Shown here piece by piece: positions 25,062 through 37,617 of a stretch of 64,000 nucleotides of DNA. How positions within the stretch are numbered: the stretch's first letter is position 1; every line of letters begins with the position of its first letter. The translations under genes and the position numbers were made by a program. The notes beneath the pieces were generated by a model. The model was not told the DNA's origin. It searched no databases and saw nothing but the letters and a program-made list of their open reading frames with translations. Source of the stretch: Podarcis bocagei (taxonomy: Eukaryota); the NCBI GenBank assembly GCA_964188305.1, contig OZ076885.1. The stretch is one strand, 5' to 3'.

Positions 25062-25457
25062 CCAAAAAGACACCTTCGCCAGCAGATGCCGAGAGGAGGA
25101 AATTAAGACCAGGAAGTGGTGGCGAGAAACCTCCAGATGAGCCTCCTTTCACATACCAGCTGAAAGCTGTGCCCCTCAAGTTTGTTACAGAAATTAAAGA
25201 CATAGTGCTGACAGAAGCAGAGTCGGTAGGCTCTTCCGCCATCTTTGAGTGCCTCATCTCTCCCTCCACTGCCATTACCTCTTGGATGAAAGATGGCAGC
25301 AACATCCGCGAGAGTCCTAAGCACAGGTTCCTCTCTGATGGGAAAGACAGAAAGCTCCACATTATTGATGTCCAGCTTTCAGACGCTGGGGAATACACTT
25401 GTGTACTGAAACTGGGAAATAAAGAAAAGACCTCTACAGCGAAACTAATTGTTGAAG
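25062..25457 (+). CDS. TTN: TTN exon about 225: PEVK end plus Ig I84
   Basis: AKKTPSPADAERRKLRPGSGGEKPPDEPPFTYQLKAVPLKFVTEIKD..STAKLIVE. Confidence 0.96.
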
Positions 25458-27274: not shown

Positions 27275-27536
27275 ATATATTCAAAGCAGAAACACCCCAA
27301 CACTTTTGTTGTATATTTTTAATTAATAACATATGTGGCAATGCCCAGACATTTTATTCTGTGTTATCCAGGTTTTCATGGCACTTTGGCTATGTGGTAG
27401 CCCTTTAATACAATTAGAAAGAAGAGATGGGCAACCTTTCTCTCTCTCTCATAGCGCAAAGGACCCTTGTCATTCATCTCTACATGTATTATGCTAATTC
27501 TAATGGTTATTAATTTTTTTGTCATTTGTTATACAG

Positions 27537-34411: not shown

Positions 34412-34648
34412 TATTGTCAATGTACGTGCCAGAAAATGTGTTGTTCTGGTATTTGTACTCTGAGGCAGGATGTTGAGAATCATGGTTGCAAAACAGCTGC
34501 AGCCAGTACTGTTTTGTCCCCAAAGGGGAATGAAAGGTTGCTACCATTCTGAATATCCAAATACCAGAAATATGGACCTGATAAAAGGAAGTGAAAGCTA
34601 TTAAAAACAAGCATTGTACAAACCTTTGCATTTGTTTGCTCTTGGAAG

Positions 34649-34775
34649 GACTGTGAAATTAAGGAGGAAGGCAAAAGGCACTGTCTTACCCTCTACAACG
34701 TGCGCTTGGACCAGGCCGGTAGCGTAGACTTCCAAGCAGCCAATGCCAAATCATCTGCCAATCTTCGAGTAAAAC
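34649..34775 (+). CDS. TTN: TTN Ig I95, 3' half (about exon 239)
   Basis: DCEIKEEGKRHCLTLYNVRLDQAG..NLRVK. Confidence 0.94.
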
Positions 34776-35199
34776 GTAAGTGTCTTGCAAGTGTATCTGT
34801 AAGATCACTTGTCTTTTACATCAGTAACTGAGCTAAACTGAAACAAGTTGAGAGTCAGAGTGGGGCATGTGATCTGTTGTTAATGGAACAGTAAATGAGA
34901 AGGAGAGACAGTCGGGTGAGCTGAGGTTAAGGAGTAGTTATTTGATATAGTTGTGTGCCTTATTCTTTCTTTATAAAAGCTTTTTATAAGTTAATTCTGA
35001 TACTTTTAATTTAGTTTGTTTGTTTTTAGATCGTGGGATAGGTATTATATAAAGATTTTCAATTAGTTAATAAGAACAGGTTGTTAGACCACTGGAATTG
35101 CCCCTCCTTATTCCAGGATGATTGGCAAGGTAGCATAATGAGTTGTTACGAAATCTAAAATATTACAAACGGACTCTCTGCTGTGCTTGGCATTTGGGG

Positions 35200-35608
35200 T
35201 ATAAGATCTGAGAGATAACACCATGCTGACATTTGTGGAAAGTGCCAGTAGCTTGATGGACAGGAACACCCTACACAGTTGGTGGCCACTTGTCTCTCTA
35301 TCCAATTGTAGACCTTGCTATTTTGGAAGGCGCATGCCTTATCTAGCAAGAGGCATGCAGGGCTTGGCAAAGGAGACAGATGCAACGTAGCTTTCTTGCT
35401 GATCTTTTCATTTAAAAGGAACAGGCTCCGCAAATAGGGAATCTCCAGTGACCAGCCTTCCCCCTGAAAACCCCAAGGGCCCAGATCTAGCCAGGGAATT
35501 TAAATAGCCTCTGTACATCATACTCCCTCTCTCTTGGGGAAAGGCACTATGGCCATTAGTAAAAGGTGCAGGTGGCTAATCTGAAGATGTTTTCTTCGTT
35601 CCGTCAAG
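35200..35608 (+). promoter_or_regulatory. Candidate internal (Cronos-type) TTN promoter and first-exon extension
   Basis: Intron counts as about 239; GATA 35213-35218 and 35339-35344; TATA-like TTTAAATA 35499-35506; Inr-like TCATACT 35518-35524; in-frame ATG 35587. Confidence 0.5.
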
Positions 35609-35751
35609 CACGTGTAATTGGCCTGCTGAGGCCTCTGAAGGATGTAACTGTAACAGCTGGTGAAACGGCAAACTTTGAATGCGAACTCTCCTATGAGGGA
35701 ATTGTAGTGGACTGGTTCTTGAAAGGACAGAAATTGGAGCCCAGTGACAAG
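35609..35751 (+). CDS. TTN: TTN Ig I96, 5' half (about exon 240)
   Basis: PRVIGLLRPLKDVTVTAGE..LEPSDK. Confidence 0.95.
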
Positions 35752-36149
35752 GTACAGAAGACATTCTTTCTCTTCTCCCCTTTTTCCATGTCAAACCCTA
35801 TTTCTTTCCCTCTTTCTCTCCTACCCCTCCCGTTTGTGAGACTGGCAGTGCAATCCTATACATACGTACCTGGAAGTAAGCCCCACTGAGCTCAATGGGG
35901 CTTGCTTCCAAGTAGAGATCCATAGGATTGCACTGTAAGGCGCTATTCTAAAATGTCATTCAGAAAAATCAGTTCCTTCCGCATGGTAGAAGATAAAAGT
36001 TTCAAAGGGAGAGGTGAAAGGGGTTGGGGAGGTTTTGTATCAGTGCTAACATAAAGGGATATGTAATATTTTGATATTAGTGGGGAAGCTTATGAATGTT
36101 TGCATCTCCTGATTCTTTCCCTTCTCTGAATGTAGAGCTGGCATTCAGT

Positions 36150-36315
36150 TCTGCATATAAGGGGATTAAGGAGATTGAAATTCCATTTCAGGCATTTGAG
36201 CAGGCTTCCAGATAACTTTCTCGGTAGATCTGCTCGCAGAGCATTTCTCACCAGCTATTTTTAACCCTTCATCAAGTGTGCTGTTAGCGCTGAGATGTGA
36301 ACAGCCTGGAATGCA
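36150..36315. promoter_or_regulatory. Candidate cardiac/muscle enhancer
   Basis: CArG-like GCATATAAGG 36153, GATA 36210, MEF2 CTATTTTTAA 36255, NKX2-5 TCAAGTG 36272, MCAT GGAATG 36308. Confidence 0.55.
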
Positions 36316-37237
36316 GTTCATTCAATATTTAAAATGTTTTAGCAGCAAGCCATATAGTAGTATAAGTAATCACATGTAGAAGTTGCATTCAGTGAAATAT
36401 TATTTGGTGCATGCTTTTTTAGATCCTCTGTTTAAGTTGTTAGAGTGTCTGTTAATGATAGGCTTACGCAGAGAATATTTGCAAAGGAAAACAGAAATAT
36501 ACCTGCTAAAATAAGGCATAGTTAGTGCAAGTTTGAAATTACCATAGCCAATTCAGCCTAATCAAAACATTAAATTTAAACTAGCATAGCGAGATTTAAC
36601 TAAATGAATAGATTAATACTTACGGTTCCCATGAAAAGTATTTTAATGGTGAAGCATTATTAGATGCATCATAAATATTTCAACTTTTATTTCAACTTTC
36701 ATATTAATAGTTAGCAAGATTTTATGTTTTGCTTCTGATTAACCATTCTACATCAGTTTAAATGGGCCTATGATGACACAAACAATGGTGTTTAGGGCAC
36801 TCCTACCCCAGTCTAGTAAGGGATGATAATCCATGCACAACCAAGCATCTCCTGACTTCTTCCCAGCTGGACAGGGGAGCTATGATGAAAAGCTTCTTAT
36901 ACAAGTACTGTAGTTCCCTGTTTTGATTGATTTGGATTATATCAACCCTTTGAAGAAGTTTACAGTTCCAGCAATCAGCTGGTGGATTCAGTCTGCCGAC
37001 TCCCACAAAACTCTAGAGGCCTTTGGGGCTTGGCGGCTGATTCAGTACGAAGAGCTGAAATTGCAACAAGAAATCAGAGAGGCCCCAATGCATGCCCAGA
37101 GGTGCATGGGTGTATAACTGGGAGTCTTTGTTTACCAGCCTATTTAGACAGACATGTGCTAATACAAATGTTTGATATAAGGTTGCAACATGTTTGCTTA
37201 CCAAATCTATTCTCCTGAACATTCCTTTTGTTTAAAG

Positions 37238-37361
37238 ATCGTGCCCCGTGCTGAAGGCAGAGTTCACACCCTTGTTCTAAGAGATGTGAAACTAACAGAT
37301 GCTGGAGAAGTCAAACTGACTGCAAAGGATTTCAGAACTCAAGCAAATCTTTTTGTAAAAG
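37238..37361 (+). CDS. TTN: TTN Ig I96, 3' half
   Basis: IVPRAEGRVHTLVLRDVKLTDAGEV..NLFVK. Confidence 0.95.
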
Positions 37362-37617
37362 GTAGGCTTCCTAAAGTAACAATTTATTCCCTTAGTAGTA
37401 TGCTAGAGACGACTGATCTGTGTTAGGCAAACTGCATGATTGGGCCGATCCTTTTCTGCAGTACTTTTTACACATAAAATGCTGGAAGGAATTCTGGCCA
37501 TAACTCAGTCTTTTAAAAAGATCAGAATGATAGCTAGCTTTTCAATCTCTTGGGAGGAAAAAATGATGCATGTAGCACCAACATGATTTGTGGGGTTTTT
37601 TCCCTCCCTGTCCTCAG

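Follow-up and report, generated by a model that had tools for sequence, protein, structure and literature searches.

A conserved block at the 3' end of titin intron 239 in a lizard as probable orthologue of the vertebrate Cronos internal promoter

Among the truncating titin variants of cardiomyopathy, the mild are separated from the severe by disruption of Cronos, the short form of titin that originates from an internal promoter. To our knowledge, zebrafish, mouse and human are the only species in which this promoter has been described, and a literature search for a Cronos of reptiles found nothing. The start of the isoform has been placed in the intron between exons 239 and 240 (Zou et al., 2015, PMC4720518; Swist et al., 2020, PMC7478974). 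The initiating methionine is found 7 residues upstream of the exon in zebrafish and 12 residues upstream in mouse and human, and the distance of the transcription start site from the exon was reported as 110 nt in zebrafish and 256/257 nt in mammals (Zou et al., 2015, PMC4720518). Here we describe the corresponding region in a stretch of 64,000 nucleotides from the lizard Podarcis bocagei (contig OZ076885.1), which we refer to as the window and to which all coordinates relate. The original prediction, made from the letters of this stretch, had proposed that the 3' end of the intron contains the lizard orthologue of the Cronos promoter and start. Since four independent lines of evidence agree, namely the orthology of the downstream exon, the position of an invariant in-frame ATG, a conserved block of about 390 nt and RNA contigs from the 3' part of the intron, we consider it very probable that the region 35215-35608 is orthologous, in squamates, to the internal titin promoter of vertebrate Cronos and also includes the leader and start codon specific to this isoform. 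The existence of such an orthologue was expected and is now well supported.

The assignment of the intron relies on the order of exons following the PEVK region, which we obtained in a profile search with the window's own Ig exons. With the exon at 25175-25456, encoding the end of PEVK and an Ig domain, set as number 225, the exon at 35609 becomes 240 and the first Fn3 exon 252, a count that presumes a one-to-one exon structure with human. The same description, PEVK end and first distal Ig domain, is given for human exon 225 (PMC6469411), and the intron number 239 of the original prediction could be reproduced in this way. The splice joints 34775>35609 and 35751>37238, which bound exon 240 on either side, are both seen in spliced RNA contigs. 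A link to the zebrafish gene is provided by the morpholino that was directed against the internal ATG. Its target found no match in an exact-match search of the fetched loci, but a single one, at 835-859 of the fish locus L007, once 3 mismatches were allowed, with 0 matches expected by chance. In this locus the target ends 39 nt ahead of the exon, the published distance in zebrafish being 38 nt (Zou et al., 2015, PMC4720518). The lizard region is thus located in the intron directly 5' of the exon that is orthologous to human exon 240, mouse exon 223 and zebrafish ttna exon 116.

The proposed start codon at 35587 is embedded in the context gaagATGt and is in frame with the exon at 35609, into which it reads without a splice as MFSSFRQ-ARVIGLLRPLKD, so that both the frame and the coordinates of the predicted N-terminus hold. 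The closest in-frame stop on its 5' side is a TAA at 35560. Because a gene caller may write M for GTG or TTG, we have inspected the DNA of 11 fetched loci in addition to the window and found a true ATG in all 12. A word search with the unspliced open reading frame (window 35587-35886) as query retrieved 115 ORF fragments from the assemblies of many vertebrates, in 113 of which the exon could be anchored. A methionine is located 7 codons upstream of the exon in 53 of these 113 fragments and 12 codons upstream in 35, with both present in three, while the remaining fragments mostly carry it at -5, -6 or -8. These two main classes correspond to the published methionine positions, the first to that of zebrafish and the second to that of mouse and human Cronos. 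In the three fragments with methionine at both positions (P0002, P0012 and P0014), an M at the first residue may stand for GTG, as is the case in the DNA of P0002. In a gene model from Callorhinchus (P0097), the protein begins with the methionine at the Cronos position and is spliced to the next exon, and in a species related to the lizard an RNA contig of run X5, extending over 35561-35748, contains the ATG at 35587.

The frames starting at -12 and at -7 can be aligned without gaps, and the lizard carries a GTG (35572) where the mammal-type fragments have their methionine, whereas the lizard ATG at -7 is mostly replaced by leucine in the latter. Within the interval 35572-35589 the start codon has thus shifted between classes, being found at -12 in mammal-type sequences and at -7 in fish, amphibian-type and sauropsid-type loci; in this comparison the mammal-type sequences, among which human may be included, were listed and counted by class as protein fragments, and the promoter alignments described below comprise fish, amphibian-type and sauropsid-type loci. 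Ser, Pro and Phe abound in the N-terminal extension, since it arises from reading the polypyrimidine tract of the intron-239 acceptor in frame. At the codon that is split by the intron (34775/35609), the sequence gives a proline (C+CA) in full-length titin and an alanine (GCA) in the intron-initiated form. In the spliced models of a frog and of Callorhinchus, an alanine is found in both forms at this position. In-frame methionines in the upstream intron are also found for several other Ig exons within the window, in open reading frames at 27455, 29365 and 30051.

For the comparison of the intron itself we used three alignments, with A1 comprising seven sauropsid-type sequences (the window and loci L001-L006), A2 eight sequences from fish to lizard and A3, calculated with MAFFT, 12 loci; the labels squamate, sauropsid, amphibian and fish for L001-L011 were inferred from similarity. 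In A1, the sequence 35209-35608 shows an identity of 0.62-0.89 to the six relatives, which is similar to exon 240, compared to 0.25-0.6 in the remainder of the intron (measured over 34809-35108). Approximately 390 nt ahead of exon 240 are in this way as conserved as the exon itself. Invariant in all seven sequences are the CCAAT box (35302-06), CTATTTTGGA (35318-27), CCTTATCTAG (35337-46), AGATGC (35377-82), an upstream ATG (uATG) and the main ATG. As seen in A2, an amphibian-type locus and three fish loci out of four still show the upstream core, which consists of TGAT(T/G)GACAG, CCAAT, TATTTT(A/G)GAA and the GATA-like CC(T/A)TATCTAG, and conservation of the promoter sequence extends across fish, amphibian-type and sauropsid-type loci. 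At the GATA site, the fish and amphibian-type sequences contain the variants CCATATCTAG, CTATATGTAG and CCTTTTCTAG. As judged by consensus sites, we take the motifs of the block to be putative binding sites of Pbx/Meis (in case of TGATGGACAG, which presumably is Pbx/Meis-like), NF-Y, GATA and bHLH factors. The A/T-rich element at 35318-35328 is located about 30 nt before the position that is equivalent to the mammalian transcription start (-256), and its sequence could be CArG-, MEF2- or TATA-like. The features of the locus are summarized in Table 1.

Table 1. Features of the intron 239/exon 240 region of lizard titin, in window coordinates.
Feature	Position	Strand	Evidence and remarks
Titin exon '239', second half of Ig domain	34649..34775	+	Final exon ahead of the internal promoter; joint 34775>35609 (GT..AG) in X1, X2 and X12; Ig-profile match 34646-34774
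Intron '239'	34776..35608	+	5' 60% unconserved and without RNA contig cover
Conserved candidate Cronos promoter and leader block	35215..35608	+	A1 alignment; identity profile; core common to amphibian-type and fish loci; RNA contigs
TGATGGACAG (TGATTGACAG in fish and amphibian-type locus)	35254..35263	+	TGAT and ACAG invariant in 8 sequences
X2 contig, 167 nt	35263-35429		Depth 3.5
CCAAT box	35302..35306	+	Invariant in 8/8 of A2 and 7/7 of A1
X1 contig, unspliced, 335 nt	35304-35638		Depth 2.7, compared to 68-81 for spliced titin contigs
A/T-rich element CTATTTTGGAA (TATTTTAGAA in fish and amphibian-type locus)	35318..35328	+	TATTTT.GA invariant from fish to lizard
GATA site, AGATAAGG on the minus strand	35337..35346	-	CCTTATCTAG invariant in 7 sauropsid-type sequences
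E-box CAGATG	35377..35382	.	AGATGC invariant in 7 sauropsid-type sequences; not retained in fish
TATA-like TTTAAATA	35499..35506	+	TTTAAAT in 5/7 sauropsid-type sequences; the remaining two read TTTAAAG and TTAAAAG
uORF, 11 codons, MAISKRCRWLI and stop	35549..35584	+	ATG 35549 to TGA 35584; context cactATGG; within X1 contig
X5 contig (related species)	35561-35748 joined to 37235-37454		Depth 9.4; only contig over exon 240 in X5
Candidate Cronos start codon and 7-codon extension MFSSFRQ, then A across the boundary	35587..35608	+	ATG invariant in 12 loci
Titin exon '240', first half of Ig domain	35609..35751	+	First exon body common to full-length and Cronos transcripts; Pfam I-set E 1.6e-05; phase 1; joints 34775>35609 and 35748(+3)>37235(+3) in RNA contigs
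Titin exon '241', second half of the exon-240 Ig domain	37238..37361	+	Joints in X1, X2, X12 and X5; Ig-profile match 37247-37360

Intron 240 contains a second conserved non-coding block, which is located about 360-560 nt past exon 240 (36109-36308) and in which the identity amounts to 0.74-0.89 in L001, L002, L004 and L006, compared to 0.2-0.55 around it. It may belong to the same promoter or enhancer region, as a downstream portion. A search of 35100-36400 against Rfam returned sub-threshold miRNA-like and lncRNA-like noise alone, at 35721-35918 and hence downstream of the conserved block.

Taken singly, the motifs of the region do not exceed the level of chance, in contrast to their conservation and the cover by RNA. 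There are 170 copies of WGATAR in the window, with 165 expected from shuffled sequence, and 17 copies of TTTAAATA in these A/T-rich 64 kb. The original prediction had named two GATA sites, which are both present, as AGATAA at 35213-35218 and as CTTATC, a GATA site on the minus strand, at 35338-35343; only the second is conserved. We have dropped the GATA site at 35213, and with it a canonical-looking TATAAG at 35200, as neither is conserved in relatives.

Evidence for transcription was obtained from the contigs of four runs (X1, X2, X5 and X12) with coded species and tissues. None of the runs is registered as RNA, and we have taken them as such from their GT..AG joints 34775>35609, 35751>37238 and 37361>37618. 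As contigs, they come without 5' end, strand or expression level, and holes in their cover prove nothing. Two contigs of low depth, one in X1 and one in X2, cover the conserved 3' part of intron 239 (Table 1). The X1 contig ends exactly 30 nt into exon 240, and the main spliced contig breaks at 35609, which we read as a branch of the de Bruijn graph at k-1, reflecting two predecessors of exon 240. In X5, the intronic leader is joined to exon 241, and exon 239 is devoid of cover, in contig data whose holes prove nothing. Transcripts from the 3' part of the intron hence continue into exon 240, and those of one related species are spliced on to exon 241. Part of intron 241 is likewise retained in this X5 contig, which reads about 95 nt past the donor of exon 241 (37362-37454) before it diverges, with exon 242 left without cover in this run. 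This read-through could reflect a retained intron, a partly processed RNA or low coverage. Beyond this stretch, we found no contig cover of 34776-35262, of intron 241 or of the non-repeat parts of intron 240 in X1, X2, X5 and X12, and the depth in the bins 34868-35218 is 0 in all four runs. A pattern of this kind is hard to obtain from evenly spread pre-mRNA, and it resembles the observation from which Zou et al. proceeded, an accumulation of reads immediately 5' of the exon (PMC4720518). An interspersed repeat in intron 240 (35849-35939) is matched over 50-90 nt by dozens of RNA contigs from the four runs, on both strands and with a summed depth of 21-318, which then run on into unlike sequence; the miRNA-like Rfam matches fall into this repeat.

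The contigs begin 305-346 nt upstream of exon 240 and therefore beyond the published distances of transcription starts, of which the mammalian one translates to about 35353 in the lizard, some 30 nt past the A/T-rich box, and the zebrafish one to 35499. If the leader were to start at the contig ends, the CCAAT/GATA cluster and four further uATGs would fall within it. Several transcription starts may coexist. This bears on the core promoter of the original prediction, in which the TATA-like TTTAAATA at 35499 and the Inr-like TCATACT at 35518-35524 would direct initiation at about 35520-35530, leaving a leader of about 60 nt with a single uORF. Both motifs are found where they had been placed, TTTAAAT is kept in five of the seven sauropsid-type sequences with a related TTAAATAG in the amphibian-type locus, the zebrafish distance of 110 nt falls exactly on the beginning of TTTAAATA, and the X5 contig begins at 35561. 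However, the pair does not stand as sole determinant of the start, since contigs begin at 35263 and 35304, and TTTAAATA is not upstream of all starts because it is located inside the X1 contig, which extends unbroken from 35304 across both motifs and on to the exon. Moreover, TCATACT is not kept beyond close relatives, and the 17 copies of TTTAAATA mark it as a common word in this A/T-rich window. The assignment of the two motifs as core promoter is doubtful, and we regard it as rather unlikely that they constitute the working one; a start at this site may nevertheless coexist with one further upstream, in which case the question is which of them is the major one.

Two further explanations would dispense with a promoter altogether. 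The conserved block could have a different regulatory function within the intron, for instance in controlling the splicing of exon 240 or in enhancing the canonical titin promoter, with the contigs originating from incompletely spliced pre-mRNA of a gene that is expressed very highly. The depth of the intronic contigs, at 3-5% of that of spliced titin contigs, would suit such a background, the X5 contig with its piece of intron 241 may be an incompletely processed molecule, and the second block at 36109-36308 demonstrates that conserved intronic DNA is not unique to the promoter spot. Yet in two runs the cover is limited to the conserved 3' 40% of intron 239 and is absent from the 5' 60%, from intron 241 and from non-repeat intron 240, an invariant in-frame ATG at just the two published positions is not predicted by a splicing element, and promoter activity of this site has been shown by experiment in zebrafish, mouse and human, with the zebrafish morpholino target mapping there (PMC4720518), so that we consider this explanation improbable. 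The unspliced contigs might also stem from an antisense or divergent non-coding transcript across the intron-239/exon-240 boundary, as they carry no strand and begin upstream of the mammal-like start position. Antisense transcription across titin has reportedly been described in human heart, and the lizard RNA would then resemble the mammalian TTN antisense RNAs. On the other hand, the X5 contig makes use of the sense GT..AG joint to exon 241 while carrying 48 nt of intron 239, no unspliced contig of X1 or X2 extends from exon 240 across its 3' end into intron 240, and an antisense RNA would leave the conserved ATG and its frame unexplained. This origin of the contigs thus appears highly improbable, and a Cronos-type internal promoter continues to be the reading that we favor.

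Ahead of the main ATG, the original prediction had recognized an uORF of 11 codons in strong context, whose stop at 35584 precedes the ATG at 35587 by 2 nt, and the sequence bears this out. A short uORF of 5-18 codons is found in all 12 loci, beginning 38-86 nt before the main ATG and mostly in the context CAYYATGR, and the uATG at 35549 occupies one column of the A3 alignment in 11 of the 12. Conservation does not extend to the encoded peptide, in which premature stops are frequent. Abutment with a spacing of 2 nt is found among the 12 loci only in the window, L001 and L002, and in L004 the uORF overlaps the main ATG. Of control windows of equal size, 33-58% contain an ATG with a purine at -3 by chance, and the retention of the uATG would correspond to a p of about 0.01 if 6-7 lineages were counted as independent, which is only partly the case. 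Judged by the alignments, the conservation of its position is suggestive. Provided that the X1 contig represents sense Cronos RNA, the uATG is located in the transcribed leader, and a leader beginning at about 35263-35304 would hold four or five uATGs. When read as RNA, the GATA/E-box block at 35334-35390 contains short uORFs encoding MPYLARGMQGL... and MQRSFLADLFI, and the MPYL start recurs in fish loci. Most simply, these are by-products of conserved DNA motifs, and they would become real uORFs if the leader started upstream of 35334.

The observations can be combined into a proposed mechanism. RNA polymerase II would start in the last third of intron 239, presumably driven by the conserved cluster of TGATGGACAG, CCAAT, A/T-rich box, GATA site and E-box. 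The acceptor of intron 239 would be read through, because a transcript that starts internally is without an upstream donor, and translation would begin at the ATG at 35587, with the seven extra residues MFSSFRQ contributed by the polypyrimidine tract of the acceptor. From exon 240 onward the transcript would be spliced like full-length titin, to yield an N-terminally truncated isoform covering distal I-band, A-band as well as M-band. The strong-context uORF at 35549-35584 in the leader may lower the translation of Cronos. Within this scheme we infer the exact start site or sites, the factors acting on the motifs, the production of the protein and the translation of the uORF. As a tentative scenario, which we consider possible without favoring it, an ancient uORF conserved in position and strong start context from teleosts to squamates would act as a brake on the short titin, with the main start having moved from -7 to -12 in mammals within a single open frame that doubles as polypyrimidine tract.

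With this analysis, the intronic block, the start codon and the leader of Cronos are described in squamates, and recognizable cores in amphibian-type and fish loci. The compact phylogenetic footprint composed of TGATKGACAG, CCAAT, the A/T-rich box, GATA and the E-box offers a guide for reporter and deletion work. A position-conserved uORF has not been linked to Cronos in the literature that we searched. The lizard genome gains a sound annotation of an alternative first exon. No established view is overturned by these findings, as the presence of a conserved promoter was expected.

Compared with the described systems, the lizard locus shows both shared and differing traits. As in Cronos of zebrafish ttna (intron e115-e116; PMC4720518), the exon belongs to the same family, the methionine is encoded 7 codons upstream in the intron, a related fish locus contains the morpholino target region at a matching distance, and the fish sequences share with the lizard an upstream core of CCAAT, A/T-rich and GATA-like elements and a short uORF in the leader. 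Conversely, the start of transcription was mapped 110 nt upstream in zebrafish, whereas the lizard RNA contigs, which do not define 5' ends, reach 305-346 nt, and the leader between core block and ATG can barely be aligned between fish and lizard except for the uATG. Cronos of mouse (e223) and human (intron 239/exon 240; PMC4720518, PMC7478974) originates, by exon count, from the same intron as proposed for the lizard, its leader of 256/257 nt is close to the extent of the lizard contigs, and the intron-encoded extension, as judged from protein fragments, aligns to the lizard frame without gaps. The mammalian proteins differ in starting 12 codons upstream, where the lizard has a GTG (35572), its own ATG being located at -7. 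Finally, the lizard uORF resembles the regulatory uORFs of vertebrate 5' leaders in being short, in its strong start context and in its location inside the transcribed leader. It departs from this class in its spacing of 2 nt to the main ATG, a trait of the window and its two closest relatives, and the suggestive conservation of its uATG position, combined with a peptide that is free to vary, would be as expected of uORFs that act through their translation instead of their product.
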